Assembly (NCBI GenBank): GCA_001179505.1
Contig: CDMY01000400.1
Span: 1-64,000 of the forward strand
From: Vitrella brassicaformis CCMP3155
Taxonomy: Eukaryota; Protista; Chromerida
Length of the DNA stretch: 64,000 bases
Reading direction: 5' to 3'
Shown here: piece after piece, positions 16,523-63,260 of the stretch
Position numbering within the stretch: position 1 is the stretch's first letter
Layout: the number at the start of each line of letters is the position of its first letter
The notes under the pieces: generated by a model
What the model saw: the letters and a program-made list of their open reading frames with translations, nothing else
Databases searched by the model: none
Told to the model about the DNA's origin: nothing
Translations under genes and position numbers: made by a program

Positions 16523-17951
16523 ATGGCTCTCTTCTCGCGCCTAACGCTCTTAGCCCTCGCCGCTCTCCTGGTGGCGGCGTGGATGCCCTCTGCCACCATG
16601 GCCAGCACAGCTGCTGCTCCCACTGCACGTCCTCTTGATGAAGCTGAAAATGGCCTGACGACTCTGGACGAGCTCGAGGTGCCTGACGAGGACGAAGAGG
16701 AAACGTTCGATGCCGACGAATACGAGGATGATGAGAACGAGGATGAGGACGAGACTGACGACGACGAGCTCGATGAGGACGAAGATGAGGATGAGGATGG
16801 GCCTCTGACGTCGGGCAACCTGACGTCTGGCAACCTGCGTGCCCTGCGTAAGCAACCGACCACATGCAATGCACCTATCCACGGCTGCCGGATGGCCATC
16901 ACCCCTGCCCTTCCCTTTGTGTTGTGTGGCGTGGTGTGCAGGCGCCCGTCCCAGTTACTGCTCATACTGTGGCCCTGGCTACCACTGCGGGGGCGGAGGA
17001 TGTAAGGAATGAGACAGACAGAGATGCACACCGGTCGCACTCGTCACTGTGTGTGTGCTTTCAGGCATTCCCGACTGCCCAAGGTGCCCACCTGGCTACC
17101 GCTGCTGGCGCGGCCGATGTAGGGAATGAGACAGACAGAGATACACACCGGGCGCTCGTCAACGTATGTGTGCTTTCAGGCATTCCCGACTGCCCAGTGT
17201 GCCCACCTGGCTGCCGCTGCATTCGCGGCCAATGTAAGGAATGAGACAGACAGAGATACACCGGGCGCTCGTCAACGTATGTGTGCTTTCAGGCGTTCCC
17301 ATCTGCCCAGTGTGCCCACCTGGCTACCGCTGCATTCGCGGCCAATGTAAGGAAGGAGACAGACAGAGATACACCCCGGTTGCTCGTCAACGTATGTGTG
17401 CTTTCAGGCATTCGAATCTGCCCAGTGTGCCCACCTGGCTACCGTTGCTGGCGCGGCCAATGTAAGGAATGAGACAGACAGAGATACACCCCGGTTGCTC
17501 GTCAACGTATGTGTGCTTTCAGGCATTCGAATCTGCCCAGTGTGCCCACCTGGCTACCGTTGCTGGCGCGGCCAATGTAAGGAATGAGACAGACAGAGAT
17601 ACACACCGGGCGCTCGTCAATGTATGTGTGCTTTCAGGCATTCGGGTCTGCCACTGCCCGCATGGCTGGGGCTGCAGACGCGGCAGTTGTAAGTGACGAG
17701 ACAGACAGCGGTGTCGTAGCCACGGGGTAGTCAGTCAGACGACGAGTCGACGTGTTGCTGCGTGTTGCTTTCAGGCTATCCCCCTACCTGCCCCCCTGGC
17801 CACGACTTCTTCAACGGCGGTTGTAAGTGATGAGACCACACAGAAAGACAGCCAGACAGACAGACACTACACAAAAACGACGTGACACGTCAACACATGT
17901 GCCCACCGCAAATCCCTGTGATGCTTGTGTCTTTCAGGCCAGAGACGCTGA
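16523..17951 (+). CDS. Secreted prepro-peptide with acidic pro-region and tandem 4-Cys modules encoded by micro-exons
   Basis: Ten exons: 16523-16847, 16942-17001, 17065-17118, 17180-17233, 17293-17346, 17408-17461, 17523-17576, 17638-17688, 17775-17822, 17938-17951; all introns phase 1 GT-AG. Product: MALFSRLTLL signal peptide, D/E tract, NLRALR, ARPSYCSYCGPGYHCGGGG, five modules of the CIPDCPVCPPGYRCWRGQ type, CIRVCHCPHGWGCRRGS, CYPPTCPPGHDFFNGG, CQRR*. Confidence 0.85.
17002..17690 (+). repeat. Tandem ~115-bp exon+intron repeat (about 6 units)
   Basis: Exon starts at 17065, 17180, 17293, 17408, 17523 and 17638 (spacing 115, 113, 115, 115, 115). Introns are nearly identical (gtaaggaatgagacagacagagatacac...gtatgtgtgctttcag). 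Confidence 0.95.
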
Positions 17952-18049
17952 CTGCACTCGTCTGCCGCCGTGATGCGTGCGCCGCTATTCTTTGATTAAG
18001 TCTACGGATGTGTGACCCACTGTTCTTTTATTAAGTCCATAAATGGATA

Positions 18050-18830
18050 CATGTGCGCGCGTGTTGCGTGTTGCGTGTGCATGTGTGTGTAAAAAGAGAG
18101 CTGGCCTGCCTCTGTACGTGTTGTGCGTCTGCACTGCATAGTCTGTTGGCGTCTGGAGCGGTGTGTGCTGTCAATTGCCTGTCAGTGTACTGGGTTATGT
18201 GTTGACTTTGCCATGGAAATAGACACGCGGGTGGGGGAGGGGGGAAGGGAACAGGGGCTGGGGAACACCGGGTTCATATCATGGGTGTGGTGTGCTTGTG
18301 TGCTGTCTGGACTGAGAGAGGGGTGGATGTTGCCTGATGTGGGTGTGGGTGTGGATGCGGTGGGCATGGCATCCTGGCCATCACATGCATACCCACACAT
18401 TCGTCACATACGGTCATTTGTCTGTCACTCACGTGTGTGTTGGTAGTGCCCTGTGTGTATGTCTGTCTGTCTGTCTGTCTGCAAAGTTCGCAGTGCACCT
18501 GTGCCCTTTGTTGTACATTCGTAGTGGATTTGTTGCGTGTGGGAGGGCCGTAGTGAGTTTCTCTTCATCGCATGACTGACACGCTGGGGGGACACCTGGG
18601 GGACACGAAGGAACGGACACTTACCATGAATCGTCACCACAAACACCTGACGGCCTCGATTGCCACGTGAATCTGTGAACCGACAAAAGCTCAACAAAGT
18701 GTCCCTCACCCCATCTCTCCCGTCCCAGCCCCTGCCCTCCCCTGCACAAAGAAAGAGCGAGCGAAACACACATCGGCCAAGGGAACGCACAGGTGCCTGA
18801 TTCCATGGTGTGAGACAGTGGTGGAGCACC
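18050..18830 (+). repeat. Non-coding 3' flank duplicated in inverted orientation at ~29620-30390
   Basis: Long shared blocks, e.g. ctcttcatcgcatgactgacacgctgggg, accatgaatcgtcaccacaaa and tgattccatggtgtgagacagtggtggag, occur as reverse complements at 29.6-30.4 kb. Confidence 0.9.
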
Positions 18831-19811
18831 TGTGCTCTCCTCAGAGCACTGGAAGCATTTGCAGTGAAACAGCGAGTCAATAACCATGATCAGACAAGCA
18901 GGCGGCTGCCCGGCCTTCCTCTCCCTCTCCTCTCGAGCTCTTTTTAGCCTTGCATTGCATCACTCATTCGCCATTGAATCACTCATTCGCCTCGCCCAAG
19001 CCTTGCTCTCCTCATCCTCGCCGCCGGCCGGGTTGCCTTTTTTTTTTCTCTTTTTTCCGGCCCAAGCTCAACCGTGTGAAACACGGGTCGGATAAATGGG
19101 AAACGGATAAATGGAAAAAATGCTCAAATGGGAGCCGTGTCCCACTTATCCGACCCTCACAGTTCCGACCCTCACAGTAAGCCCGATCGATCACACTGCA
19201 GGGCCCCCTTTTTAATACAGTGGGTTCATACATCTTTTTAATTGATGTCCCACAGTAATAATGACACCAGTCTCGACGGTGGAAATGCCAACGAGGGATG
19301 AACGAGTGTTTGACAGCACCGAATGACAAAGGCATTCGTTCAATCAGTAACGCAGCTGTCTGTCTTCCTGTCAGTCTGTCAGGCTACACACGCTCTCATT
19401 TACTCAAGACACATAGACACAGCGAGGCAAGCAGGGAGGTCAGAAAGAAAGATCACAGATAGGTGACAGGCAGGCTCGACTCGCCGACACACATACGCGC
19501 GCACACAGAGAGAGCCGACATACGGCGCCCGATGTCGGGCAGACAGACAGACAAGCACCAGCGGATGAGTCGAAACAATCATGATCACTCACTCACTTGA
19601 ACAAATAAACAAGCAAACAAACAAACAAACAAACACACTGACACACACACGGATAGAGAGACACAGAGACAGAGCAAGGGCGCAGATACACACTCCCGTC
19701 ACACACGGCGGACACACACACCACAACAAATTGAGCGGATCGGTTGGATTCCCGCTTATGTATACTATGTCTGTACATAACTGTCCTGCCGAAAAACGCT
19801 AACTGCTTCAC

Positions 19812-21218: not shown

Positions 21219-22062
21219 ATGGCGACTGTTCTCATGATGATGATTCTCTGTGTGGTGTCGACCATGGTCGGCACAGAGGCAAGACCCGCACAACAGGTAT
21301 GTCACACACACACACACCGTGACCTATCCACCCACTCATCTAATGCTCTGGTGTCAATGGCTACCTTTGTTCTGTTCAGGTCCGTTTGCGCGGCCTGCAG
21401 GTGTCCCCTCCTGGCAACACGTCGCTGTCTGCGTCAGAATATGAGGCGCTGCTCGCTTCGATGGGGGGCGACACCACTACACAAGTCACCTCACTCTACC
21501 GGTAGACACACACGTCATGCCAACAGGCTGGGATCATCTGACAGGTAATAAGCACATTCCATCTGTGTGTGCGTGCTGAAGGACGTCTGTGGACGGCACC
21601 ACCTATGGCGACCTGCTGGACAATGTGGGCGACGCGAAGCCTCTCGTGGTGGTGGTCAGGAAGGACAAGTATGTCTTCGGCGTCTACGTCAGTGCCGGCA
21701 TCCAGCTGCCCGACGACCCGACCAGCGAGCATTGGTACGGCAGTGATGTGTGGTGGTTCTCACTGGCCGGCCACTTCCCCCAACCGACCAAAATAGACAT
21801 ACCACCATGGGAGCAGTGGATGCGGGTGGCGGGGAGGAAGGCGAATGCAGTGGAGGCGAATATGTACATCGGTAGGTATCTGGTGTTAGGTGAGCAGCGA
21901 GGCTGGCCAGCCGCCGGCATCCGCAGCTGTGAACAGTACACCGACAGCGACTATCTGCCTGAGGGCTACACGGGAGTGAGGGGTGAGTTTGCCGATGCTC
22001 TGATGGGCGGGTCTCGTAACTTTATGGCCGATGAAATAGAGGTGCTGCGTGTGGTGCAGTAG
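21219..22062 (+). CDS. Secreted TLDc-domain protein
   Basis: Exon 1 (21219-21296) encodes a signal peptide; exon 2 starts at 21380 (VRLRGLQVSPPGNTSLSASEYEALL...LYR); exon 3 (21582-22062) reads TSVDGTTYGDLLDNVGDAKPLVVVVRKDKYVFGVY...WWFSLAGHF...GGSRNFMADEIEVL. Confidence 0.9.
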
Positions 22063-23604: not shown

Positions 23605-23904
23605 NNNNNNNNNNNNNNNNNNNNNNNNNNNNNNNNNNNNNNNNNNNNNNNNNNNNNNNNNNNNNNNNNNNNNNNNNNNNNNNNNNNNNNNNNNNNNNNN
23701 NNNNNNNNNNNNNNNNNNNNNNNNNNNNNNNNNNNNNNNNNNNNNNNNNNNNNNNNNNNNNNNNNNNNNNNNNNNNNNNNNNNNNNNNNNNNNNNNNNNN
23801 NNNNNNNNNNNNNNNNNNNNNNNNNNNNNNNNNNNNNNNNNNNNNNNNNNNNNNNNNNNNNNNNNNNNNNNNNNNNNNNNNNNNNNNNNNNNNNNNNNNN
23901 NNNN
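23605..23904. other. Assembly gap (300 N); others at 24871-25170, 33545-33844, 35241-35540, 49711-50010, 55280-55579 and 63449-63748
   Basis: Fixed-length N runs, several flanked by poly-C or poly-G tracts. Confidence 1.
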
Positions 23905-23999
23905 CCCGGGCCCCACCAGAACAGTCACACACACACACACACACACACAAACTCAGACCTACATTCAGCGACAGAGCAGCGACAAACATGTCGGTGTGT

Positions 24000-24870
24000 C
24001 TACTCCCGGCGCAGGTGGCCACTGCAGCGGCCGTGGCAGTGGATGCAGCAGACGGGCTTGTTGGCGATCCACTGGAGGGTGCCCCTGGCGCAGCGGTGCT
24101 GGACGGGCGCGTGGTCGCACCTGATGCAGGTCTCCTCGTGTGGCTCGACACCCAACGGCGGCGGCAGCTCGTCGCCACGCTTGAACTCAAAGCCATCCGG
24201 ACACGAATGCCTGATCAACAGACACACACACACACACACACACACCCATGGGGACGGTGACGGGTGGACGAGCCCTTTCCCGTGTTGCGGTGCTTACAGT
24301 CTCGGTGCGAAGTGCTTGGCGACGCACTTGTCGCCGCTCGGTTGGTAGCCAAAGGGGCACCTGAAGTCAGCCGGGTGCGTATGGGTGATGACGGACACGT
24401 GGCGGTGCGCATCGAGAACGCCACGGGGGCAGTAGGGGTCGCGAGGGGCATACTGGATCCTGCCGGTGAAGGGGCACTTGGTGTGGCACTTGCTGCCGTC
24501 GGCTGTCAGCTGGTAGCCGAAGCGGCACCTGTACTCGGGAGGGCAGGTCTCCTCTGTGATGCAGGTGGTCCCCGACAGAGTGGCGTGGGGGTCCCTGCAG
24601 AAGGGAGTGCGGTTGGCGTACTGATACAGAACACACTGATTGCCCTCAACCACATAGCCCTGACGCACACACACATACACGCAGCCGATGCCTCATGACG
24701 TCCTACTGAGTGTGAGTGTTTGTGTACCTGTTTGGCGCAATAGTAGTGTGGCTCGTGGCGGAACGGCTTGGCGCACTTGTCGTCGAGATGCACGAAGCCG
24801 TGTGGGCACTCGGGGAGGGGGTCCTCTCGGATGGGACAGAAACCATTCTTGGCCGCTGCGAGGGGCACAC
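24000..24870 (-). CDS. OWP-like Cys-repeat protein, copy 2 (5' end lost in N gap)
   Basis: Near-identical to copy 3 with scattered differences (KHFAPRL vs KHFAERL, KCHT vs KCYT, DPYCP vs DPSCP); ends HLRRE*. Confidence 0.75.
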
Positions 24871-25266
24871 NNNNNNNNNNNNNNNNNNNNNNNNNNNNNN
24901 NNNNNNNNNNNNNNNNNNNNNNNNNNNNNNNNNNNNNNNNNNNNNNNNNNNNNNNNNNNNNNNNNNNNNNNNNNNNNNNNNNNNNNNNNNNNNNNNNNNN
25001 NNNNNNNNNNNNNNNNNNNNNNNNNNNNNNNNNNNNNNNNNNNNNNNNNNNNNNNNNNNNNNNNNNNNNNNNNNNNNNNNNNNNNNNNNNNNNNNNNNNN
25101 NNNNNNNNNNNNNNNNNNNNNNNNNNNNNNNNNNNNNNNNNNNNNNNNNNNNNNNNNNNNNNNNNNNNNNCCCCTCCCGGGCCCCACCAGAACAGTCACA
25201 CACACACACACACACACACTCAGACCTACATTCAGCGACAGAGCAGCGACAAACATGTCGCTGTGT

Positions 25267-26188
25267 CTACTCCCGGCGCAGGTGGCCACCGCAGCGGCCG
25301 TGGCAGTGGATGCAGCAGACGGGCTTGTTGGCGATCCACTGGAGGGTGCCCCTGGCGCAGCGGTGCTGGACGGGAGCGTGGTCGCACCTGATGCAGGTCT
25401 CCTCGTGTGGTCCGACACCCAACGGCGGCGGCAGCTCGTCGCCACGCTTGAACTCAAACCCATCCGGACACGAATGCCTGATCAACAGACACACACACAG
25501 AGACACACCCATGGGGACGGTGACGGGTGGACGAGCCCTTTCCCGTGTTGCGGTGCTTACAGTCTCTCTGCGAAGTGCTTGGCGACGCACTTGTCGCCGC
25601 TCGGGTGGTAGCCAAAGGGGCACCTGAAGTCAGCCGGGTGCGTACGGGTGATGACGCACACGTGGCGGTGCGCATCGAGAACGCCACGGGGGCAGGAGGG
25701 GTCGCGAGGGGCATACTGGATCCTGCCGGTGAAGGGGCACTTGGTGTAGCACTTGCTGCCGTCGGCTGTCAGCTGGTAGCCGAAGCGGCACCTGTACTCG
25801 GGAGGGCAGGTCTCCTCTGTGATGCACGTGGTCCCCGACAGAGTGGCGTGGGGGTCCCTGCAGAAGGGAGTGCGGTTGGCGTACTGATACAGAACACACT
25901 GATTGCCCTCAACCACATAGCCCTGACGCACACACACATACACGCAGCCGATGCCTCATGACGTCCTACTGAGTGTGAGTGTTTGTGTACCTGTTTGGCG
26001 CAATAGTAGTGTGGCTCGTGGCGGAATGGCTTGGCGCATTTGTCGTCGAGATGCACGAAGCCGTGTGGGCACTCGGGGAGGGGGTCCTCTCGGATGGGAC
26101 AGAAACCATTCTTGGCCGCTGCGAGGGGCACACAACAGGCCGCCAGGAGAGCCAGCACACACACCGCCACACCGCACTGGGAAATCAT
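25267..26188 (-). CDS. OWP-like Cys-repeat protein, copy 3
   Basis: Three exons: MISQCGVAVCVLALLAACCVPLAAAKNGFCPIRE...CPHGF...|GYVVEGNQC...CPFGY...KHFAERL|HSCPDGFEF...HLRRE*. Homologous to 4871-5809. Confidence 0.8.
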
Positions 26189-26551
26189 CTTTGTTCTTGT
26201 CGTTGCAGACAGGAGACCACTGAGGCAGGGATAAGAGAAGGTGGCACGGGAGAGAGGCAGGCGGACGCACAGAGAGATCTGAGTTCGGATGAATTATGAC
26301 GATGGCTGGAAGGATAGATAGAACGGACAGGGAGAGAGAGGCAAAACGGCGGGAGGGGGGAGAGGAGAAAAATCCCTCCCTCCATCCCTCCCTCCTACCC
26401 TACCCTTAGCCAAGGTATCGTCCCAGATCTTCACTTCCCACCTTCCAGCCTTCCTACTTCCCGCTTCCCTCGGCCTCTCTCTTGGCATCATCACCTTCAT
26501 CCTTCCTCGACGACTTGATCATCGCTCTCTATCGCCCTGTTATCGTCGGCA

Positions 26552-28457
26552 ATGGCTCAGCTTGCGGGAATCGTGTGGACTCTGCTGGTCGCCCTGTCCC
26601 TGGTGGCCAGTCAGCCCTCTGCAAACAAGACGCCCGTGGTTTCCTACAGCACATTCAGCCTGGTGAGTGATGGTGCCGCCAACGACCAGCCGAGTGTCCG
26701 TGCGCTCAGCAGTCCGCCACCGCGTCCAGCTGGTGCAGCTGGCATCCACCGCATAATCGTCAAGCTCAAGCACCCACACACCGAGGGCCTTGCCCGCGCC
26801 GAGACCATCTCGAGGGCACTGCAGGCCTCCCTGTCAGCCGAGACCACCGTGCACACGGCTGAGACGACGGTCCACCACCTCAACAGCTTGTCCATGGACG
26901 TGGTGGATCTGCCGCTAGGTGTCGATGCAGCGGCCACATGCGAGGCTGCCCTCCTGGCGTCGGATGAGATCGACATCTGCGAGCCGGATGCCGTTGTTGC
27001 GACGGCCTCTGGCCGCAGGCTGCGTGCCCGGGCAGCACAGGAGCCCAACCGCTTCGTGCCCGACGACCCAATCTTCAAGGAGCAGTGGGGGATGGCCAGC
27101 ATCGATATGCCCGAGGCGTGGGCCTTCCTGTCTGAGCAGCAGCAGGAGACGGCCAGTGGGGCCGACTCAGTGGGCAAAGGTACGGTGGTCGGGGTGATTG
27201 ACACCGGTGTCGACTACACCCATCCGGACCTCAAGGACGCCATGTGGGTCAATCAAGGCGAGATCGCTGGCAACGGCATCGATGACGACGGTAGGGATGC
27301 AGGGAGGGAGGGGGGGAGGGAGGGAGGAAGGGACATCCACACACACGATCTGCATGCATTCCTGGGTCTGTATGTGTCTGTGTGCAGGTAACGGCTTTGT
27401 TGATGACATTCACGGCTGGGCCTGGTGCGACGGATCCGAGAACCCGCACATTGGCGACGGCGATCCTATGGATGAGGGTGGCCATGGAACTCACTGTGCA
27501 GGTACCAGAACTCGCCCTCTCTCTTCGCATCATCACCTTGATCCTTCACCGACGACGTGATCACTGTGCAGGTACCATCGCAGCGACTGCCAACAACCAG
27601 GAGGGCATCGCAGGCGTCGCATTTGGCAGAACCAAGATCATAGCACTCAAATTCCTCTGCGGCGAGGTAAGTCGAATAACCATAGGGTCGCGGGGCGCTC
27701 AAATCACATGTCTGTGTGCCCCTACATCAGGATGGTCGGGGTTCCCTTGCTGACGCGGTCCACGCAATCAACTATGCCGTTGCCATGGGGGCCACGCTAA
27801 CAAGCAACAGCTGGGGCTACCTTGGGTCTACTGCATACAGGGCGCTCGAGGAGGCCATCAGGGAGGCAGAGGAGGCCGACATGCTGTTCATCGCCGCGGC
27901 TGGCAACGACGACAACGACAATGACGGCCCCAGGAAAGGCTACCCGGCATCATCTGAGCTGGACAGCATCATCAGCGTCGGCGCGGCGACTAGAAATGGA
28001 GAGAAGGCGCCCTTCAGCAACTACGGCCTCGAGAGCGTTGACGTCTTTGCGCCGGGGACGAGAATCTTCTCGACGATGCCCGGTGGCAAGTATGCGGCAA
28101 TGGGGGGCACCAGCATGGCAACGCCATTTGTCGCTGGTACGCAAGCACTGAGGACTGCTGTGTGATACCCATTAGACGATCCAATCGACTGTTGGTTTCT
28201 TTGTGACTTCAGGTTTGGCTGCCCTTCTGTGGTCGACGGATCCGGCGCAGAGCTATTGCGACATCAAGCATCGCATTCTGTCGACTTCCGAGAAGATGGA
28301 CTCGCTCGAGGGCCTGTGCGTCACGGGGGGCCAGATCAACGCACTGAAGGCCGTCACGTGTGCCGATTGCAAATGGACCCCCACGGAGGAGCCGACGGCG
28401 GCTCCGACGGAAGTTCCCACGCAGGAGCCTACGACGGAGGAGCCGAGTACCCCGTAA
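26552..28457 (+). CDS. Secreted subtilisin-like serine protease (S8) with propeptide and Thr/Glu/Pro-rich tail
   Basis: Signal peptide; pro-domain ending GRRLRARAAQ; catalytic triad motifs VVGVIDTGVDYTHPDL, GHGTHCAG|TIAA and GTSMATPFVAG; oxyanion AAAGND; tail PTEEPTAAPTEVPTQEPTTEEP. Confidence 0.95.
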
Positions 28458-29619
28458 GGGCCCCCACGGCTGGTTCGCTGACGAGAAGCTGCACTGACGG
28501 CCGGGGGGAAGACTGCCTGCCTGCCTGCCTGCCTGCTGTCTGTAGCGGCGGATATGTATGTGTGTGAATGTCTGCGGCATGTTGGTGTACTGGCTGCACT
28601 GTCTGTGCTGTGGTGTGGTGTGCTGTGCTCTAGCTTAGTAAGTGAGAGTCGTGTGTAGGTAGTTCTTCGTTCGTTCGTTCATTCGCTGGTCGGCCGGCAG
28701 CGCCGCGCCACTCACTGCCACTCAATGTCTCGCGCAGCCTAGTCGGCTGCATCTGCCCTTCGTTGTGTGTGAATGAAACAGCTCTCTCTCTCTGTGTCTC
28801 TCTCTCTGAATAGCTCTCTTTGTGAATACACTCGTACGTTAGTGCTGTGTTCATGTTCGTGCTTTGCCAAGCCGTCGGTGCACCGAGTTCTGACGCGATC
28901 CGACGTGAGCTGAGCGGCTTGTTGTCTGTGCATATATGTGCATGTGTGCTGCGATCTGATCATTGGCTGTATAAATTTGTCGATAGCAACTGACTGCACT
29001 GCACTGCACGCTGATCTGTGCATGTGTACACATTACACATGGGAGGGCGGGGTGGGGGATGGGACGGATAAGAGACCGACGAGAGACACATGCGCACCAC
29101 ATATACATACGTCAAGTGAATGATATCATATGATCTATCCAAATGAAAACGAAATTCGGCACTGAGGCGGCTTGACAGCATTAACACACAAACTTGGCCG
29201 GACATGCGCGCAGACGGCCCGTGCTGTCGTTCCATCCATCCATCGCCTGTTCCATGAAAGGACAGTGAGCGACGCACACAGTACAATATGCGCGTCAGAC
29301 AGGCAGACGGGCGAGTGAGTCAACATCAGCCAGAGGGTGGATCGGATCCATCGCCTCTTCTCTATCCCGTGAGGCGTCATCGCCAGCGCCCCTCGCTGCA
29401 CACGGGACAATAGAGAGACACGTGATAGCGAATCATCCCGAGGCGACGGGTTTATTGTCACAATCCGCCAAACCAAACAGACGTCTCTCTCCCTCCATGC
29501 CTTTCCCTCCTCCTCAGCCCATGTAGCTCTTTGCTGCAGGTCCAGCCGCAACTTTTGTCTGCAGTGGATCTCTGACCTCTGGGGCACCTCTCCACCCCTC
29601 CAGCAGGCACGCGACATCG

Positions 29620-30390
29620 CTCCACCACTGTCTCACACCATGGAATCAGACCTGTGCGCTCCCTTGGTTGATGTGTGTGTCGCTCGCTCTTTCTTTGTGC
29701 AGAGGAGGGCAGGGGCAGCTGGGCCGGGAAGGGTGGGGTGGGATACTTGGTTGATCTTTTGTCGGTTCACACATTCACGTGACAACAACTTGAGGTGGAC
29801 GATGAGCGAGGCCGTTACGTATTTGTGGTGACGATTCATGGTGAAGTGTCCGTTCCTTTGTGTCCCCCAGGTGTCCCCCCAGCGTGTCAGTCATGCGATG
29901 AAGAGAAACTCACTAGGCCGTCCCCTCCCACACGGAGCAGAAATCCACTACAAATGTACAACAAAGGGCACAGGTGCACTGCGAACTTTGCAGACAGACA
30001 GACAGGGCACTACCGACACACACATGTGCGTGACAGACAAATGACCGTTTGTGACGAATGTGTGGGTATGCATGTGGTGGCCATAATGATATCATGCCCA
30101 CCGCATCCACACCCACACCCACATCAGGCAACATCCACCCTCTCTCAGTCCAGAAAGCACACAAGCACACCACACCCATGATACCAACCCGGTGTTCCCC
30201 AGCCCCTGTCCCCTTCCCCACTTCCCCCACTCGTGTGTCTATTTACATGCTGAAGTCACACACATAACACAGTACACTGACAGGCAAAAGGCACACACAA
30301 CACCACACAACAAAAACTATGCAGTGCAGACGCATAACGCAAACAGCAAGACAGGCCAAGTGCTCTTCACACTTACGCAAACATGCACAC
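29620..30390 (-). repeat. Inverted copy of the 18050-18830 flank
   Basis: Reverse-complement matches to 18.05-18.83 kb; lies 3' of the paralogous peptide gene at 30515-31008. Confidence 0.9.
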
Positions 30391-30514: not shown

Positions 30515-31008
30515 TCAGTACCTCCGGAAGCCTGCACACATGTCCCGGACAGAGAGCTGCCCTGTGTCCTATGTGCTTCTGTCTCATCCCTTACATTTGT
30601 GGCGCCAGCAGCGATAGCCGGACCGGCAATGGCGGTCTTGACGACAATCATGAGGTCCTGCACAGCAAAAACCACAGAAGGGAGGGGTACGTGATGATGC
30701 TCACTCACTGTCGGGCCAGTCGTGGGTGCGTTGTGGTCGTGCTCACCCAGTGCACGCAGGTTGCCCGACGTCGCAGGCCCGTCCTTCTTCCCTTCATCCC
30801 TCTCATAGGTCTCAGGCTCATCGACCAGCAAGTCCTCTTGTTCATCCACAATCGTCAGGCCAATGTCAGATCCATCAACAGCAGCAGGAGGGGCAGCAGT
30901 AGTGGAAGCGGGAGCAGCAGCTGTGCTGGCCACCGTGGCTGAGGGCATCCACACCGCCACAAGCAGAGAGGCGAAGACAACCAGTGTCAGGCGCGAGAAG
31001 AGAGCCAT
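30515..31008 (-). CDS. Secreted prepro-peptide, single-module paralog of 16523-17951
   Basis: Exons 31008-30747, 30657-30595 and 30531-30515 (phase-1 introns): MALFSRLTLVVFASLLVAVWMPSAT...acidic...ATSGNLRAL-GPHDCRQDRHCRSGYRCWRHKCFRRY*. Confidence 0.85.
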
Positions 31009-32796: not shown

Positions 32797-35700
32797 ATGG
32801 CGAGGAGGCAGCTCGAGCGCACATACAGGTCTTTCGGGGTGGCATGATGAATGCATCCGCCCGCGTGATGTGATGAATCTGTGGATCTGTTTGTGTGCAG
32901 GGAGGGCATGGCGCCCGAACAGCATATCGATGCTATGCGGGTGCGGACACACAGGCGCACGCACGCAGGAATGACGCACTTTCTTTACGGCGTGTGTGTG
33001 TGTGTGTGCAGGTGAAGCGTAAGGTTGGAGAGCCCCTTGAGAAGCTCAAGGAATTCTCTGAAATCATCAAGATGCTCAACGAGGGGTCTACGGGACTCGC
33101 AGAACGCGTAAGCATGTGCGTGTGCGTGTGTGCGTGTCTTTGGTGGAGATCTACCTGTGTCCAATTGTGCAGATCTATTCCGAGAATGATCATTGTGTCG
33201 AGGAACTGATACAGAACGTCCGGTGAGCTTGAAACCCACACACACGTGTACGCGCATGCGCACGACCGTCGTGTGTGCGGGTGGTGTGACGTATGAGTGG
33301 GCAGCGATGCGCAGCTGAGTCTTTCCGACGGCGAGCTCGGGGACCTGGACATCAGGCTGCTCAAAAGCGACCCGTTCAACGCCATGAATGGTAGACAAAT
33401 ACACGGAGGACGGCCATCTCCCATTTGTGTGTGTGTGTGTGTGTGTGTATGCAGTGAAGTTGATCGCCTCTGAGCAGAAGTGCGCATTCCCCCCAGACAA
33501 GAGTCTGAAGCAGGACAACGGCTGCCTCATCCTCGTAAGTAGCCNNNNNNNNNNNNNNNNNNNNNNNNNNNNNNNNNNNNNNNNNNNNNNNNNNNNNNNN
33601 NNNNNNNNNNNNNNNNNNNNNNNNNNNNNNNNNNNNNNNNNNNNNNNNNNNNNNNNNNNNNNNNNNNNNNNNNNNNNNNNNNNNNNNNNNNNNNNNNNNN
33701 NNNNNNNNNNNNNNNNNNNNNNNNNNNNNNNNNNNNNNNNNNNNNNNNNNNNNNNNNNNNNNNNNNNNNNNNNNNNNNNNNNNNNNNNNNNNNNNNNNNN
33801 NNNNNNNNNNNNNNNNNNNNNNNNNNNNNNNNNNNNNNNNNNNNCATACATTCGTCATGGCTTCAACTCATGGATGGATGGATGGATGGATGGATGCAGT
33901 GCTACAACGAGCGTGGTTTCCGCTGGCAAGATGTCGAGTCCATCTGCTTCATCGGCGAGTCCACCAAAAGGGTACCTACGTACCTCCACGCACGACACAC
34001 ATGACGCGGGCCACGAATGTGTACACGATGGGTATATATGGGTGGTGTGTGGATTGTCCATCGATGTGTGTAGGAGGGGAGCGGCAAGTTCGTTGGCGAG
34101 AAGGGCCAGGGCTTCAAGGCCGTCTTCAACATCGCCAAGTGAGCTGACCGGCCATTCGATTCATGTGTGCGTGGATCCATCCATCCATCCATCCATCCAT
34201 CTGTGTGTGTCTGTGTCCGTGTGTCCGTTGTCAGCTTCGCGTACGTGCTGTCGGACCAGCCTTCGTCGCAGTACTTCTTTCGGCTGCGCGAGCACAAACA
34301 CCCCCTGTGTGGCGTCAAGTACGTATGGCACCACAAACACCATACTCGCCCATGTGTGTGTACACATCCAAGCTGTGTGGGTATGGGCGAAGGTATATCG
34401 TCCCTGATTACCTGCCGCGCGCATCGCTGCCCGAGGAGGTCACGACCATCATGAAGGGGAGGTATGTGCCGATAGCAATCAATGTGTCCATGCACTCACA
34501 AATGAATTTGTGTCGCGTGTGGTGTTGCACATGCATACATTCGTCATGGCTTCAACTCATGGATGGATGGATGGATGGATGGATGCAGTGCTACAACGAG
34601 CGTGGTTTCCGCTGGCAAGATGTCGAGTCCATCTGCTTCATCGGCGAGTCCACCAAAAGGGTACCTACGTACCTCCACGCACGACACACATGACGCGGGC
34701 CACGAATGTGTACACGATGGGTATATATGGGTGGTGTGTGGATTGTCCATCGATGTGTGTAGGAGGGGAGCGGCAAGTTCGTTGGCGAGAAGGGCCAGGG
34801 CTTCAAGGCCGTCTTCAACATCGCCAAGTGAGCTGACCGGCCATTCGATTCATGTGTGCGTGGATCCATCCATCCATCCATCCATCCATCTGTGTGTGTC
34901 TGTGTCCGTGTGTCCGTTGTCAGCTTCGCGTACGTGCTGTCGGACCAGCCTTCGTCGCAGTACTTCTTTCGGCTGCGCGAGCACAAACACCCCCTGTGTG
35001 GCGTCAAGTACGTATGGCACCACAAACACCATACTCGCCCATGTGTGTGTACACATCCAAGCTGTGTGGGTATGGGCGAAGGTATATCGTCCCTGATTAC
35101 CTGCCGCGCGCATCGCTGCCCGAGGAGGTCACGACCATCATGAAGGGGAGGTATGTGCCGATAGCAATCAATGTGTCCATGCACTCACAAATGAATTTGT
35201 GTCGCGTGTGGTGTTGGTGTGTGTGTGTGCGTGGGGGGGGNNNNNNNNNNNNNNNNNNNNNNNNNNNNNNNNNNNNNNNNNNNNNNNNNNNNNNNNNNNN
35301 NNNNNNNNNNNNNNNNNNNNNNNNNNNNNNNNNNNNNNNNNNNNNNNNNNNNNNNNNNNNNNNNNNNNNNNNNNNNNNNNNNNNNNNNNNNNNNNNNNNN
35401 NNNNNNNNNNNNNNNNNNNNNNNNNNNNNNNNNNNNNNNNNNNNNNNNNNNNNNNNNNNNNNNNNNNNNNNNNNNNNNNNNNNNNNNNNNNNNNNNNNNN
35501 NNNNNNNNNNNNNNNNNNNNNNNNNNNNNNNNNNNNNNNNGGGGGGGGGGGGGGGGCATACCTGCACACAGGACGTGTTTGTGTCTGTCGATGAAGAAGG
35601 ACGACCGCATCGACGCGTACGACATCATACACAAGAAGATCGCCGAGGTGAGTGAGTGTGCCGCGCTGCTCCTCCACTCATCCACAGACACGACCATCTG

Positions 35701-41517: not shown

Positions 41518-41550
<33 letters not shown>

Positions 41551-45472: not shown

Positions 45473-45505
<33 letters not shown>

Positions 45506-45857: not shown

Positions 45858-45893
<36 letters not shown>

Positions 45894-48800: not shown

Positions 48801-51427
48801 GCTGTTTCCGAAGCCGATTGACGCACGTACGCACACACACACACACGGCAAGGACGTATCAACACACAGATGTGATGGGTGTTGTGTTGGTCTGTGTGCG
48901 GGTGGGTGGGATGGCCAGGTGTGTGTGTGCGTGAGGCCATCGGGGATCTGCCGTCGATCAGCGGGCCGCTGGCGTGTCACGAAAACGGGGGCTACAGGAC
49001 CTACGCGCGGAAAGGCAAGCGCTCTCGAGACGCCAATTCATGGACTGATGAGTCTGTTTGTACGGGTGTGTGTGTGTGTGAACAGGCACGCTGTGTGTCT
49101 ACCAGAAGGACATGCGCGACATCGTCAACAACCGACCACTCAGGAACCATGTAGGCGTGCATGGATTGTGTCCGCACCCACCCACACCCCCACACACACA
49201 CGCATGGGACAGACGCACCTCGTTGACGTGTCATGCAGGTGTTCGTGTCATCGGATGAGCACCATCACCCGTCGCAATCGTCGCAATCGTCGCCGTCGGC
49301 GTGCGAGTGGCAGCAGATCTACACCCACACAAACGTCATCACGATGCACCCCGACCCAAAGCAGAAGAGGCCTCTCACCGTGTAAGCACCCATCCATCCA
49401 CCCATCACACAGAGAGAGAGAGAGAGAGAGAGGTGGTCCCCCCCGCATGTGTGTTGTGTTGTGTGTGTGGCAGCCGTGAGTACGGTCGTCTTTGGTCGTT
49501 CCCCGACTCGTTCTTCTTCTCTGCCGGCATCACACAGCACCAGATCAACATCAGTATGCGCACTCACAAAGTGTGGTGTGCGCCGGTTATATACTCTGTG
49601 TGTGTGTGTGTGTGTGTTCAGTTGTGGCATCCACGCCTCCCCTGGTGCTCAAGCACATCGCCATGGCTCTCACTGACGGCGACGTGTATGTGCCCCCCCC
49701 CCCCCCCCCCNNNNNNNNNNNNNNNNNNNNNNNNNNNNNNNNNNNNNNNNNNNNNNNNNNNNNNNNNNNNNNNNNNNNNNNNNNNNNNNNNNNNNNNNNN
49801 NNNNNNNNNNNNNNNNNNNNNNNNNNNNNNNNNNNNNNNNNNNNNNNNNNNNNNNNNNNNNNNNNNNNNNNNNNNNNNNNNNNNNNNNNNNNNNNNNNNN
49901 NNNNNNNNNNNNNNNNNNNNNNNNNNNNNNNNNNNNNNNNNNNNNNNNNNNNNNNNNNNNNNNNNNNNNNNNNNNNNNNNNNNNNNNNNNNNNNNNNNNN
50001 NNNNNNNNNNCCCCCCCCCCCCCCCCACACACACACACACAATGATGCAGAGATGTGTGTGCATGGGTATGGGGCGTCTATCTACGTCGGTGTGTGTGTG
50101 TGCAGGCCTCCCGCGGTAGACGATGCCCACCCCGCCCCACCCGCACCAGCTGCGGCTGTCTGTGTTTGTGTAGCTGACGGCAAGGACGACAAGAAGAGGG
50201 GCGGTGGCAGGAAGAGACCATTGGAGGAAGGTATGTGTCCGCACATCCACAATCCGAATCATTGTATGCCCCTGTTTGTGTGTGTGTGTGTGTGTGTCCG
50301 CCTGTCTGGGCGCACTCAGCCGATGAGAAGAAGGACCATAGGGAGGGGGGTGGCGGCGGCAGTGGCGGTAGCAAGAAGGCAGCGTCGGATAAGAATGAAG
50401 GTCGGTACCCCATACACCGTACACACGCCAAACGGTTCACTCAATGCATATAGGACGGCAATATGGGTGCGTGCAGATGACGTTGATGTTGATGTTGTTG
50501 ATGACGACGAGCCCAAGCGGCCAATCAGGGCCAGGAAGAACAACAAGCGCAAGCTGCCCGACAGCGACATAGAGGAGGAGGACGGTACGCACACACGCAT
50601 CAGAGAGAGAAGAGACACATGTGTTTTCATTCCTGCAGATGAGCACGAGAAGAAGGAGGCGGAGAAGGACAGCGAGAAGAAGAAGGACAAGGACAAGGAG
50701 ACACCCGTGGCCGCCGCTGCTGCAGCAGCTGCTGCTGCACCCGTCCCTGCTGCTGCTGGTGCTGCTTCTGCTGCTGCATCGGGGTGAGTACCACATTGGT
50801 GTCCAAATGCAGCACCATCTGTGTGCACGTCATGGATGGATGGATGAGTGCAGGTCAGCTGCCGATGGCGATGACGGCGTCCATGATGAGGACGGGTTGA
50901 GGATGTACGTGGACATCGTCCCGGACGGCCAACGCCACGGCGGCCATCAAGACCAAGCAAAGGAGGAAGAGGCAGCTGACAGCACACAGGACAAGAAGGA
51001 CAACAAGGGCAAAGACACACAGAAGGTACCCACCCACCCCCACAGAGACACGTGCCCCATCCGTACTTGTTCGTGCCTTTTTGTGTGCCGCATTCACACA
51101 TAGGCCGACAGCAAGAAGGTCTCTCCCAAGCCGAAAGCCAAGTCGGCCCCGAAGGCCAAGCCGCAGGCTGAGGCCAAGAAGAAGACCTCGGGCACCAAAC
51201 CGGACGCCAAGCGGCAGAAAAAGGAGAAGGAGGAGAGAGAGGGAGACCACAAACGGGGTGAGTGCTGCGCCCCACATGAGATGCGTGTATTGACGGCGGA
51301 CACATGTTTGCCTTTGCGTGTGGTGTGTGTTGGGCGGGTGGATGCGCTGTGCATGTGTTGTGTTGTGTTGTGTGTGTGATCAGGCCAGGTGCAGAGCAGC
51401 ATCACGCAGTTCTTCGGCAAGAAGTAG
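32797..51427 (+). CDS. Giant multidomain protein: Sacsin/NO-VEIN-type GHKL ATPase, long middle region, 2x FN3, BAH, degenerate C5 DNA-methyltransferase fold, charged tail, PIP box
   Basis: About 100 short exons joined in phase by a manual walk (GT-AG plus two GC-AG introns; gaps at 33545, 35241 and 49711 unresolved). GHKL: EELIQNVRDA, YNERGF..ICFIGESTK, VGEKGQGFKAVF, LQPECFLFL, GLPALVNADWRLASNRE..WN. FN3: FEVSWTDCPGADKYMLQ..YELFVTAL and TIKLAWDRVEGAEGYDVYV..VKIRAF..SDWS. MTase: DLFAGGG, PEYVVLESP, DYGVPNTR, VREAIGDLP, LTVREYGRLWSFPDSF. Ends QSSITQFFGKK*. Confidence 0.8.
33845..35217 (+). repeat. Apparently identical 689-bp tandem duplication of four GHKL exons (probably an assembly artefact)
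   Basis: The unit starting at 33845 recurs at 34534 (offset 689). Both outer ends abut N gaps. Splicing both copies would join phase 2 to phase 0 and shift the frame. Confidence 0.85.
51392..51415 (+). other. Canonical PCNA-interacting (PIP) box QSSITQFF at the C-terminus of the giant protein
   Basis: Last exon (51384-51427) encodes GQVQSSITQFFGKK*, which matches Q-x-x-[ILM]-x-x-F-F. Confidence 0.8.
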
Positions 51428-53793: not shown

Positions 53794-56124
53794 GCCGTCT
53801 CTGAGTGGTGCTTGCAGAGAATGCATGTGGGCGGCTCTCATGTGCGGACGGTTTGGCGACCTCTTGTTGGGTGGCGATGTGACGACACTTGCGTGGTCGG
53901 TGTGATGTGATGTGAAGGGCTGACATCTCCTGCATGCGCACGCACGCACTCCCAGACACCGAAAAGCGATTTCACGGTGCCAATCAGTCATGGGAGTCCA
54001 TCACACATACATGCACACGCACGTTCACATTCATGCACAACAAACTCATGACATGCAAGGCAGCTACAGTCATCACGCAGCACACACATGTGTCTGCGAC
54101 CCCTTCGTTCGTTCGCCAACCACCGCCCGCCCACTCATCTGTACACACACGGGCACTCTCTCGCTCAAGGTAGTGCATGTGAAACGCACCACGGTCGACT
54201 GAAAACGGTAGATTCGCCGTCTCGACACCGAGGCCAAGTGGTTGAAAGGCAGAGTCCCCTGCCCATCAAACACTCGGCCTCCGGCTCGACACGCAAAACC
54301 CACCAGCCATCAGCCACCCATCAGAACGACAGTCCATCAGAAGGAGAGGGAGGAAAAAGCGTTCGCAGGACCATACCTCAGCCCGTCAGCACCCAGCCAG
54401 CCGTATGCACAAATGACTCTCTCGCTCTCTCGCTCTCTTCTGTCGCCACCCAACCCAATGAAAGACGGCAGGAAACACTCGACTCACTCGGTGTATCGTG
54501 CCCTCATGAATGCGGCTGCTCCCCGTGTCTCATGCTCTCACCGCACACGACCTCAGCCACGCCAGCGCGCATTGGCTCGACCAAGGACATGTACTACCAA
54601 GATCTGAGTCACAGGCAGCAGTCGCACCGAGCCTCCATGGGACAAACAAGACGAGATGATCATGCAGTTGCATCAGCAGCAGCGGTAGTGAAAGGGAGAG
54701 GGGAGATAGCCAGTTGCAGGCAGGCAGGCAGGCCCTCCCTGGTGAGGTGAAACATAACCAACATCGGAACAATTTCACCATTCATGCGCGTGCAAAAATG
54801 CGCCCTTCATGTGATGTCAAAACTGACCCACCCAGCCATTCCCCTCTCCCATACGACGATACCCACACGCACACTCTCCCACTCATATAACTCATGGATT
54901 GGTGCGTTGAGAGAGGCGGGCCTGCTGTCTGTCTGCCTGCCTGTCTGGTCGTGTCTGTCTGGAAGTGCATCAGGTTTCAGGTAACGGGTGGTAGTGGTAG
55001 GAGTGTGTTGATCGGGTAGCAAAAACACGTCCGCCGGATGCTTGAGGTGAGCTTATCACAGTCGCCGCGCCAACCCACGCCACGCAGTCTCTATCTCTCT
55101 CTCCCATCCCCTGCACCTGGCCTTCTGTACATTATACGCTTGTATACACACACAGACAGACACTCAGTCAGACAGACAGACAGACTGACCAACACGCGAC
55201 ACAACGCAGACCCAGACGCACACAGCAGACAGGCCGATGGAGCGAACGAAGGAAGGAGCCATCACACCTTCAAAAATCCNNNNNNNNNNNNNNNNNNNNN
55301 NNNNNNNNNNNNNNNNNNNNNNNNNNNNNNNNNNNNNNNNNNNNNNNNNNNNNNNNNNNNNNNNNNNNNNNNNNNNNNNNNNNNNNNNNNNNNNNNNNNN
55401 NNNNNNNNNNNNNNNNNNNNNNNNNNNNNNNNNNNNNNNNNNNNNNNNNNNNNNNNNNNNNNNNNNNNNNNNNNNNNNNNNNNNNNNNNNNNNNNNNNNN
55501 NNNNNNNNNNNNNNNNNNNNNNNNNNNNNNNNNNNNNNNNNNNNNNNNNNNNNNNNNNNNNNNNNNNNNNNNNNNNNNNAACACACAAGACACACATGAA
55601 TTGCATCCCAATCGTCAAAAACTCATGTAGCACGCATCCGTGACATCCATCCATCCAGCAGCTACTCATGGCACAAGTGAACGAAATCAGAGAGAGGAGG
55701 GAAGCCGAATTCCTGTCTGAACGTTCGTGCGTGTGTCTCCCTTCCTGCCCATTCCCCGCAACTGCATAAAGGCCGTTTGTGTGCCTGTCTGATCGGCCGC
55801 TTGACGACCGACCGATGGTGAATGAAAATGGCCGTCATGATGGTGGTGAAAACACATCACACACACACGGACACACGAAGAACCTCTCTCACACTCACTC
55901 TCTCACGTACGCAGGTCGGTCACTTTGTGAGCGGGGCCCTTCTCCCCCTCTCTGTCTCTCACTGCACTACACACATGCAACAAAATGCACGCACCGCTCA
56001 CACGCACGTCGTGACACGATAGAGACAAAGAAAATGCATTACATACGACAACGGTGTGTACGGTATGGAATAAAGAAAACTCTCCCATGCAGGCAGCCGT
56101 GTATGAGCGAGTGTAGTCGGTTAG

Positions 56125-60901: not shown

Positions 60902-61357
60902 ACGAATGACGCCCCCACCCTGCCACTCACCCCCTTCCCCCCCAATCTCTCTCTCTCCAGATGATCCAACAGGGCGTCTGACTTGTTGCTGCGTCAGGGA
61001 GAGAGCCGGATGGAGCGGTTGGTTGGTTGCTCGTTGCTGGTTGGCTGGATAGTGAGTAAGGGGAAACCTGCGTGGTTGGATGAGACGGCCGTGAGGTCGA
61101 TGTGTGCACGTCCACGTCCGTGCGTATGTATGTTGATTACATGTACACATGTGACACTGGTCTGTTTGTCCTTTGTATGGCAGGGGTATAGACAGCCCTG
61201 CCTGCGGCTTGGTCAGTTGCACTCACTCCCATTCGTATGTGTACTGTACACCACAGATCACCCACCACCCTGCCTACCGACCATGACAATCACGGCCGGT
61301 CCTCCGAAAAATACGTGCACGCGCGAGAGGATTGTGCCCCAGCGCCGCTTGTATCGA

Positions 61358-61681
61358 TCAGCTGCACTTCATGATGCCCGACACGACGAAGTCCCACTTA
61401 TTAATGTGAGTGATGTCCCGCCTCACGTAGCACTTGCCACTCCTCAGCATATAAGAATACGCCACGCACCCGCTGGTCCTCTCACACCGTTCGCAGCACG
61501 CGTCCTCGTCCCTCTCGGTTGTACCGGAGCGGTCCTCCAGTAGGTCCTCGTCCTCGTCGCTCCAGAACATTTTCCTGCCCTTGCTGCGGACGTGTCGGTT
61601 CGTACACTGCGCCCGGCCTCCCACGAGAGCACACAACAGCAGCAGGGCAATAACAGTCAGAACACCTTTGTAGATCTGCAT
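61358..61681 (-). CDS. Small secreted PAN/Apple-domain protein
   Basis: Intronless. MQIYKGVLTVIALLLLCALVGG signal peptide, then C...DEDACCERCERTSGCVAYSYMLRSGKCYVR (CCxxCxxxxxCxAxxY...C PAN pattern). Confidence 0.75.
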   Translation of the reverse strand: MQIYKGVLTVIALLLLCALVGGRAQCTNRHVRSKGRKMFWSDEDEDLLEDRSGTTERDEDACCERCERTSGCVAYSYMLRSGKCYVRRDITHINKWDFVVSGIMKCS

Positions 61682-62629
61682 CGCAAGCGAACGATAGGAT
61701 CCCGTTACCGCTCGTTTTTTGAGGCGAAGTTCGATCTTGGCCGCGGCCGCATGAAACCCCACGGCTCACCTATAGAGATAGGGGATTCCAAATGAACACA
61801 CATGCAAGATGTGCACACAGACGGTGCTTGTCGAAAGTGCGTGAGAGGCGTAGAGACAGGCGGAAATCGGCTGTTTGACATTCGTTGGGCGACCTTGAAA
61901 TGCTAGAGGGATCGATACATGGTTCGATGGATTCTTCACTTCGATGCTTGAGTGTTCTCGCGATGTCTCTGTTTACCCGTCCCATCCCATGTTTACCCCT
62001 GTCTGTAGCTGCCCCTCCCGCCCTCCCACATCAAAGACATGCAAGTATACACACATCCAGTCAGCCAATCACATATATCAGATCAGCTGAGAGCTCGGTG
62101 AACGAACCACTCGAACATCTAAATAAATGACTGACTGACTGACGCACACGAGCGGGTGCTGAGTGCAGCACCCCCCACACACCCCCTGGCTCCCACACAC
62201 ACGAAGATGAAGATGACATGACTGACGACACATGAAGATGACGACACATTAAAAAGGGATATGAAACAAACACTATGTGGCCTATGTACATCCGTCACCA
62301 GGACGGGGTGGGACATTCTATTCGACCAGACCAGACCAGGACAGACAGACCGACCGACTGACTGGCTGAGAGGCAGAGAAACAGCCCAGCATGAAGCTAC
62401 TTGAACAAAAGAAAGAACGCACAGCGCACAGCATTTCAGTATGAGGGATCTCGTTGGTCGTGTGGCTCGTTTATCTCCTCAGTCGCCGCTCGGCACGTCA
62501 GTCAACGCACCAGCTGCCGCACCAGACGGAAAAACAGTCACACACACACACGCACACGCGTTCCCACATGCACGTCACTCATCCTCGCCCTGCCTAGCCC
62601 AGCACACCCACCTGTCAGCAGGAGTCCGT

Positions 62630-63260
62630 TCACCAGCGCGGTCGATAGATACATCGGCAGGGGGGGGCCATGGGACGGCGAGCGCAGCGACGGCGCCAGC
62701 GTCTGCAACGGTCGGTCCAAGGATGGTCCCAGCACCTGTTCTTCATTCTGCGGCAGCGCCTTCGCCCTCCCCCTCCCCGCAGCATTCGCAAGGGGTGCTC
62801 GTCAGAATCCTCTTCGTCATCGTCGTCGTGGTCATCATCATCACCCACCTGGATTCATACACACAAACACCCGCCGACAGGCACGTGGCTGGTCTGTGCG
62901 CGCTCCATGTGTGTGTGTGCGTCTGCGTGAGCTGCATATGTGTGTGTGTGGGTCTGTGTCAGGGCTCCTGCCCACCTCATCTTCATCTTCATCTTCAGCT
63001 TGCAGCATTCCATCTGTGTCGAGATTGTTGTCGGGGATGGCCATGTCATCCTGCACCCACGTGACACCCAAGGGAACGACAGGAGGACAGACGCATGACA
63101 TCCATAGTGACAAAGAGCAGCACAGGTGGCCATGCATCCTTACCGTCAACGGATCAGTGACCGCCGTGGACTCCTGAGCCACCTTGCTCAGCAGGGGTGT
63201 TGGGGCGCCGACAGCACCGGCCAACAGGAGGGCGCCAACGAGGCACAGAAGCAGCTTCAT
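62630..63260 (-). CDS. Secreted prepro-peptide: acidic pro-region, LRMLR, Arg/Trp/Cys-rich cationic peptide
   Basis: Exons 63260-63144, 63050-62976 and 62848-62630: MKLLLCLVGALLLAGAVGA...DDDDHDDDDEEDSDEHPLRMLRGGGGRRRCRRMKNRCWDHPWTDRCRRWRRRCARRPMAPPCRCIYRPRW*. A possible extra exon (62513-62498) would add CWCVD*. Confidence 0.8.

Follow-up and report, generated by a model that had tools for sequence, protein, structure and literature searches.

In a window of 64,000 nt from the alga Vitrella brassicaformis CCMP3155 (the whole stretch from position 1 to 64,000 of contig CDMY01000400.1, hereafter C400), we find two members, gene 1 and gene 2, of a family of predicted prepropeptide genes in which the first exon encodes a signal peptide, an acidic propiece and a conserved S-G-x-L-R-x-L junction. 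Vitrella is a coral-reef alga belonging to the chromerids, whose closest relatives are the apicomplexan parasites (malaria, Toxoplasma). An original prediction from this DNA had described genes 1 and 2, together with a third gene, as an undescribed dispersed family of secreted prepropeptides, and had further proposed that their LRxL motif is a maturation signal common to unrelated proteins. The first proposal is supported by at least 11 paralogs, an invariant junction and an anionic propiece, while the second is not supported, as discussed below. Read from its sequences, the family is dispersed, much larger and more diverse than three genes, and would consist of prepropeptides that combine a first exon for export and processing with swappable cargo exons.

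The window is nuclear DNA of about 55% G+C with short GT-AG introns (60–130 nt). Searches covered the 72.7-Mb assembly of 1064 contigs, to which C400 belongs, and used single exons or the public proteins P0001–P0006 as queries, whereas spliced exon joins were used for residue counts and for comparison with public models.

Genes 1 and 2 and the family they belong to

16523–17951, forward strand: gene 1, from sequence reading, a rule-based exon chain and a tandem repeat
16523–16847, forward: gene 1 exon 1, with signal peptide, 81-residue propiece of charge −35 and SGNLRAL
16826–16846, forward: gene 1 junction motif S-G-N-L-R-A-L, ending 1 nt before the exon 1 donor
16942–17001, 17065–17118, 17180–17233, 17293–17346, 17408–17461, 17523–17576, 17638–17688 and 17775–17822, forward: the eight cargo exons of gene 1
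17938–17951, forward: last exon of gene 1, a micro-exon reading CQRR-stop
18018–18827, forward: gene 1 3′ flank, 83% homologous with the gene 2 3′ flank (30441–29619)
30515–31008, reverse strand: gene 2, hand model equal to public protein P0002
31008–30747, reverse: gene 2 exon 1, with signal peptide, propiece of charge −9 and SGNLRAL at 30768–30748
30657–30595, reverse: gene 2 exon 2, the sole cargo exon
30531–30515, reverse: gene 2 exon 3, reading CFRRY-stop

In both genes the order of signal peptide, acidic tract, LRxL and basic Cys-rich part is as had been predicted, with exon 1 finishing on SGNLRAL. In gene 1 this exon reads TSGNLRAL at its C-terminal end and closes in phase 1 one nucleotide further on. 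All introns of the gene are in phase 1 and split a Cys codon as T|GC, each cargo exon opening with GC. The first cargo exon is 60 nt long and the remainder 48–54 nt, and the core unit is a 54-nt micro-exon encoding an 18-residue module, C-x3-C-x2-C-PPGYR-C-x4. Together the exons make up a cargo of eight 4-Cys modules (147 residues, 31 Cys, charge +18), and the Cys-rich, basic C-terminus that had been predicted is thus present, not as one peptide but as eight tandem 18-residue modules. Tandem Repeats Finder reports the exon-plus-intron unit as a 115-bp period with 5.8 copies and 91% matches, and the repeat array, used as a DNA query against the whole genome, found no second array. We also observe that seven of the eight introns of the array (17002–17937), all except the first, keep the frame to a Cys-Lys(-Glu)-stop, and that most of them open with GTAAGGAATGA. 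Retention of such an intron would therefore yield shorter peptides with the fourth Cys completed, and this may be a route to peptides of one to eight modules from a single gene.

The hand model of gene 2 is identical to P0002 at every residue, and its predicted cargo is a peptide of 26 residues with 4 Cys and a charge of +6. As the 3′ flanks of the two genes are homologous, the pair derives from a segmental duplication, and genes 1 and 2 are true paralogs. A larger block (26373–30293), holding a subtilisin gene and the gene 2 3′ flank, recurs at 71953–75796 of C400 with 90–95% identity. Within this repeated arrangement exon 1 of the peptide gene is just 72% identical and the cargo exons cannot be aligned, which points to a mosaic past in which family members have undergone recombination or conversion with one another.

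Two queries, the first exon of gene 1 and that of a diverged copy, detect ten propiece-bearing loci in the whole assembly: three on C400 (16523, 31008 and 76714), two on C331, and one each on C286, C626, C496, C469 and C929. An eleventh copy (L038), an intact member of the Arg-Trp-Gly (RWG) type described below, lies on the 5508-bp contig k147_4753463 of the ENA metagenome ERZ893784. This contig is 87.5% identical in DNA to the C626 locus over 2 kb, and belongs either to a related strain or species or to a paralog missing from the assembly. The gene models are in good agreement with public annotation, since two hand models equal public proteins exactly, and P0003 and P0005 match exons of two further copies.

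In an alignment of the prepro regions of ten copies, conservation of the signal peptide is good and the acidic tract ranges from 34 to 81 residues. Past the signal peptide no column is invariant except one Asp and the S, G, L, R and L of S-G-x-L-R-x-L; a second propiece element, G-L-T-T-V-D-E/D, is nearly invariant and lies 20–50 residues upstream of the motif. The codons of the motif vary synonymously among copies (TCT/TCG, GGC/GGT, CTG/CTT/CTC/TTG, CGT/CGG/CGC) while the amino acids are unchanged, and since the propiece around them has diverged, shared ancestry alone is insufficient to explain the conservation. In six copies the donor of exon 1 follows 1–7 nt downstream of the motif. In the L003/L007 branch, with five copies, it lies 66–69 nt inside exon 1 instead, so that splice-site context is insufficient as an explanation too. 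We take this as evidence for selection on the motif at the protein level. All 11 copies have a RAL or RGL core, with the junctions RALR, RALG, RALQ, RGLQ and RGLK, and the switch in charge from negative propiece to positive cargo coincides with the motif.

Cargo, charge and proposed function

After the motif the subfamilies bear no resemblance to each other and cannot be aligned. Six copies encode the prepro region and the cargo in different exons. All Cys-bearing copies have phase-1 T|GC introns and a tiny last exon of the form C-x-R-R/x-stop. In the Cys-free copies the stop stands just ahead of a relic of a T|GC splice site. The Cys-free cargo, found in L002, L006 and the metagenome copy, has the form GRRRGGRRGHSGH...(RWGRG)n...His run, with 64–67 residues and a charge of +21 to +23. 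Four copies (L007, L008, L009 and L026, the last being P0005) have a domain of spacing C-x8-C-x5-CC-x3-C-x4-C straight after LRGLQ, followed by two further Cys modules and a His/Asp run. The cargo of P0001 consists of two Lys/Trp-rich C-x5-C-x5-C modules. His/Asp runs are found in cargo as HHDDHHDDH and with up to 9 His, and the proteins hold 14–31 Cys each. Within the L007 subfamily the ratio of nonsynonymous to synonymous substitution (dN/dS) is about 0.1–0.4 in prepro region and cargo alike, so these are constrained coding genes under purifying selection. With dN/dS below 1, positive selection in this subfamily was ruled out. We conclude that the diversity of the cargo came about by exchange or replacement of cargo exons and not by fast point substitution.

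The propiece has a charge of −8 to −35 and the cargo of +6 to +23 in nine out of ten copies. Although the sample is small, the two are correlated, with a Spearman rho of 0.94 over six subfamily means (p = 0.005) and of 0.85 over the ten copies. A natural control exists within the family in the form of at least four paralogs (window 2662, C286:89399, C286:91234 and C585:829) that share the signal peptide and 5′ leader and have an acidic Cys module followed by a transmembrane helix, without the acidic tract and without LRxL. The one in the window is:

2662–3062, forward strand: control paralog, with an acidic C-x5-C-x5-C module, then a transmembrane helix; no acidic tract and no LRxL

Around this gene (2662–3240, forward) we observe a frameshifted relic of a GPGYHCKRGKC cargo module about 140 nt beyond the transmembrane exon. 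An internal duplication has apparently disrupted the copy at C585:829.

In the AlphaFold model of P0005 (mean predicted local distance difference test score, pLDDT, 57) the propiece scores below 50 and the Cys modules reach 70–83, and the propiece is probably disordered. A Foldseek search of this model against the PDB gave nothing below E = 0.48. The list of fold matches consists mostly of knottins, Dkk and tachystatin, all of them non-significant (E > 0.4) and obtained with a low-confidence model.

We favor, with moderate confidence, the interpretation that the family encodes secreted antimicrobial or toxin-like peptides that would be freed by cleavage at the junction. In this scheme the signal peptide would be removed in the endoplasmic reticulum (ER), after which the anionic propiece would shield, and perhaps chaperone, the cationic cargo. 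An endoprotease of the secretory pathway that reads the Arg and Leu of R-x-L would then cut at the junction, either after the Leu, in the manner of the Plasmodium and Toxoplasma export elements (PEXEL and TEXEL), or one residue later (R-x-L-x), in the style of site-1 protease (S1P). The freed cationic peptides would then have an extracellular role, most likely against microbes or grazers. Targeting to the plastid was set aside, the acidic tract being unlike a transit peptide.

Several observations weigh against this interpretation. The charge correlation stands on just five to six independent subfamilies. The copy L003/P0003 contains both propiece and motif, but the region that follows the motif, which includes a long His/Asp stalk and a transmembrane helix, has a net charge of −15. 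Being acidic and anchored, it shows that the propiece is not strictly tied to a soluble cationic cargo. The structure model of P0005 is of low confidence and offers no significant fold match, the His/Asp-rich stretches may hint at metal binding instead, and neither the P2′ residue of PEXEL (E/Q/D) nor the RRL of TEXEL is matched by the family.

Two other roles of the proteins are unlikely in our view, but deserve consideration. In the first, GLTTVDE and SGxLRxL would form a signal for sorting or for docking to a receptor, by which the proteins reach a regulated secretory organelle or the cell surface; the motif would then stay uncut, or the cut would fall elsewhere. The near invariance of a second propiece element fits such a signal, as does the membrane anchor of the motif-bearing P0003, and there is an analogy with apicomplexan parasites, in which propeptides of microneme and rhoptry proteins function in sorting. 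However, the motif stands exactly at the charge switch, and six copies have it no more than 7 nt from the boundary of exon 1, which suits a cleavable junction, and a pure address tag would not need a propiece charge that scales with that of the cargo. In the second, to which we give a similarly low probability, the products would be structural or metal-binding parts of the thick laminated wall of the cell or sporangium, with cationic domains rich in Cys, Gly, Trp and His cross-linking or binding metals or polyanionic polymers. The long His/Asp runs and the many Cys of each protein would suit this role, and transmembrane-anchored family members exist. On the other hand, typical antimicrobial compositions are seen in the 26-residue peptide (4 Cys, charge +6) and in the Cys-free (RWGRG)n peptide, either of which would make a poor building block, and toxin and host-defence families are known for just such a pattern, with extremely diverse cargo behind conserved prepro sequence.

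LRxL motifs and proteases outside the family

62630–63260, reverse strand: gene 3, with exon 1 at 63260–63144, exon 2 at 63050–62976 and putative exon 3 at 62848–62630
62848–62630, reverse: putative exon 3 of gene 3, with an acidic run, PLRMLR at 62794–62777 and a 48-residue Arg-rich tail with 6 Cys
21219–22062, forward strand: secreted TLDc-domain gene, with exon 1 at 21219–21296 (signal peptide and RPAQQ) and exon 2 from 21380 (VRLRGLQ, with LRGL at 21386–21397)
26552–28456, forward: secreted S8A subtilisin-type protease, with signal peptide, N-terminal prodomain and RRLRAR at 27014–27031, within the duplicated block 26373–30293

These three genes were put forward as further carriers of the motif, and the proposal that follows from them, in which LRxL would serve the Vitrella secretome as a general code for maturation, with the adjacent S8 protease as its possible reader, is in our estimate unlikely, and somewhat less probable than either role discussed above. 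LRxL occurs at 6.2e-4 per residue in the open segments of the window, and therefore single occurrences are not significant whereas an invariant motif in 11 paralogs is. Set against background in this way, the motif stands out by its invariance within the family, but single occurrences are at chance level and a genome-wide pattern is not enriched. That pattern, five acidic codons, up to 30 nt and then CTN CGN NNN CTN, gave 34 hits against 173 in the reversed control. Outside three family members, no hit combined an upstream signal peptide with cationic, Cys-rich sequence downstream within one open segment, but as the pattern is narrow, missing seven of the ten genomic family copies as well as gene 3, this is weak evidence of absence.

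Gene 3 is unrelated to the family in sequence and in intron phase, and it had been described as a prepropeptide with PLRMLR. Its signal peptide and the start of its acidic tract, encoded by exons 1 and 2, are shared with public model P0006, but P0006 takes another acceptor near 62706, inside putative exon 3 and in another frame, and contains neither PLRMLR nor the Cys-rich tail. Codon-usage log-odds, trained on exons of the window, give about 1–2 bits in either frame and do not discriminate between the models; that the acidic tract runs smoothly over the junction of exons 2 and 3 mildly favors the model with PLRMLR, which we consider on balance probably correct. In that model PLRMLR marks the exact border at which an acidic run gives way to a tail rich in Arg and Cys, and from the background rate the chance of an LRxL within three residues either side of such a boundary is about 0.004. 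No paralogs of exon 3 were found in the genome, and the ESM Atlas gave no usable match. Downstream of gene 3 (61681–61500, reverse strand) we observe a small gene with a signal peptide, a basic stretch, an acidic stretch (SDEDEDLLEDRSGTTERDED) and a Cys-rich part, without LRxL.

The TLDc protein does read VRLRGLQ after its signal peptide, as reported, in the order signal peptide, RPAQQ, intron, VRLRGLQ, so that LRGLQ stands about ten residues past the signal peptide. This is a single occurrence with a chance of roughly 1%, chosen after the fact, and the paralog of the gene on the same contig covers the 3′ end only and not the LRGL end. TLDc proteins are usually intracellular, and the clear signal peptide of this one (21219–22062) marks it as an unusual, secreted member. 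For the subtilase, the prodomain carries RRLRAR as it had been read, but this is LRAR and not LRxL. Given a putative exon in gene 3, a chance-level occurrence in the TLDc protein, LRAR in the subtilase and a scan with 34 hits against 173, a common maturation signal across unrelated proteins is not supported, and a junction in common among unrelated genes is a weak claim.

The neighbouring S8 protease, which had been named as a candidate processor, fares no better. Its nearest matches are bacterial-type subtilisins, namely deseasin MCP-01 (6.7e-29) and subtilisin BPN′, rather than kexin/furin or site-1 protease. Of its six closest paralogs, four share a contig with family members, which counts in favor of such a role, but this linkage between subtilisin and peptide genes is explained by duplication of the block at 90–95% identity. 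The genome holds 22 other S8 matches and, at the exon level, 17 matches to the Pfam Asp (pepsin-type) family. We do not favor the adjacent subtilisin as the processing enzyme, and our model does not need it. Upstream of the subtilisin copies we observe four Cys-rich secreted paralogs (4593–5818, 23970–24870, 25237–26178 and C400:70480–71717), with 68–79% identity and a weak cEGF match, which are members of the duplicated cassette.

Finally, the notion that the motif has no function of its own, and is kept only by shared ancestry or by overlap with the exon 1 splice donor, is very improbable, for although all motif-bearing copies are paralogs and six have a donor 1–7 nt past the motif, S, G, L, R and L have remained invariant through synonymous codon changes while the propiece diverged in length and sequence, and in five copies any splice site is 66–69 nt away.

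Assembly gaps bear little on these genes. The runs of N in the window are:

23605–23904, 24871–25170, 33545–33844, 35241–35540, 49711–50010, 55280–55579 and 63449–63748

None of the seven lies inside gene 1, gene 2, gene 3, the TLDc gene or the subtilase. The last of them is 189 bp upstream of the gene 3 ATG, and gene 3 may have an undetected exon upstream on the side of the gap, although the ATG itself opens a typical signal peptide. Near-identical tandem copies stand beside gaps at 23905–24870 and 25176–26133 (97%) and at 33845–34527 and 34534–35216 (100%), and are probably assembly artefacts, not true duplications.

Comparison with known systems

An exhaustive profile search over 1.84 billion cluster representatives returned five proteins, all from Vitrella or from a Vitrella-like contig, and a word-based search with the P0005 cargo returned the self-match alone. 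In current data the family thus appears restricted to the Vitrella lineage. Neighbours of P0002 in the ESM Atlas are precursors of spider toxins and of LEAP-2, with scores of 0.75–0.84, which we regard as leads only. Searches of the literature yielded no report of such peptides for Vitrella, and we know of no earlier account of cationic defence or toxin peptides encoded by genes of alveolate algae. If the peptides are active, they would amount to a compact natural library in which a single export cassette serves very different cationic scaffolds (mini-peptides with 4 Cys, domains of knottin type, tandem repeats of micro-exons, and Arg/Trp-rich peptides free of Cys), of value for the study of interactions between algae and bacteria on reefs and as peptide leads. 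If they are inactive, the family would still illustrate clearly how lineage-restricted genes can evolve in modules at the level of exons.

Several cargo domains resemble known Cys-rich folds in their spacing. P0001 matches the Dickkopf N-terminal domain (Pfam Dickkopf_N, PF04706) with 33.4 bits at a cut-off of 25, a match that rests largely on Cys spacing, and P0005 reaches 23.2 bits, under the cut-off. P0002 and P0003 gave no match to this domain, and over the genome, exon by exon, no score exceeded the cut-off. DUF7107 and knottin-type mini-domains belong to the same comparison. The likeness to Dickkopf_N lies in the repeated C-x5-C-x5-C spacing, but the Vitrella members have no second (colipase-fold) Dkk domain and other members have no Pfam match. 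The inhibitor cystine knot, or knottin, has the spacing C-x(3-7)-C-x(3-8)-CC-x(2-6)-C-x(1-17)-C. The domain of L007, L008, L009 and L026 comes close to it, its first loop being one residue over this range.

Among systems that use an RxL-type motif, the oomycete RxLR-dEER signal is not matched by the family. RxLR is read only in gene 1 (RALR) and gene 3 (RMLR), with G, Q or K at the fourth position elsewhere, and the acidic tract of the Vitrella proteins lies upstream of the motif, not downstream.

RxL is the core of PEXEL and TEXEL, which are cut by clade D aspartyl proteases (PMC8540915). PEXEL (RxLxE/Q/D, cut by plasmepsin V) and TEXEL (RRLxx, cut by ASP5) share with the Vitrella junction an R-x-L core downstream of a signal peptide, in a closely related lineage, and a cut after the Leu would release the Vitrella cargo. 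They differ in that P2′ in Vitrella is A, P, H, R or S and not E/Q/D, that P2 is A or G and not R, that the motif lies 34–81 residues past the predicted signal cleavage site, and that there is no export to a host cell. The invariant SGxLRxL is a concrete candidate processing site in the sister lineage of the Apicomplexa, where RxL-type cleavage drives effector export. One could speculate that an RxL-type cut in the ER or Golgi of Vitrella, a free-living relative of these parasites, arms cationic defence peptides, that the enzyme is ancestral to the PEXEL/TEXEL protease pathway, so that the effector-export signal of the parasites would derive from an older system of peptide maturation, and that a prepro exon with exchangeable cargo exons is a previously unknown route to host-defence peptide diversity in protists; we consider this combination a long shot.

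Site-1 protease (S1P, SKI-1) and its plant form SBT6.1 offer a second comparison. The canonical sites of plant S1P/SBT6.1 on peptide precursors are R-x-L-x and R-x-x-L, and its substrates, such as the RALF23 and GOLVEN/CLEL precursors, are small secreted peptides matured in the Golgi (PMC4983112). R-x-L-x is matched by every family junction and by RMLR in gene 3. The S1P consensus does not, however, include the Leu that precedes the Arg or the invariant S-G, and the adjacent S8 protease is a generic subtilisin.

In overall organisation the family resembles the precursors of alpha-defensins, conotoxins and frog dermaseptin-type peptides, in which a signal peptide is followed by an anionic propiece and a cationic, mostly Cys-rich cargo. 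As in those systems, the charge of the Vitrella propiece scales with that of the cargo, the prepro region is conserved while the cargo cannot be aligned between subfamilies, and prepro region and cargo are on separate exons in six copies. The differences are that the exhaustive search found no sequence relation, that the junction is S-G-x-L-R-x-L and not a dibasic (KR) convertase site, that the cargo is under purifying and not diversifying selection within the subfamily, and that the host is a unicellular alveolate alga. As far as sequence comparison can tell, the defensin-like organisation of the family is a shared way of working and not homology.

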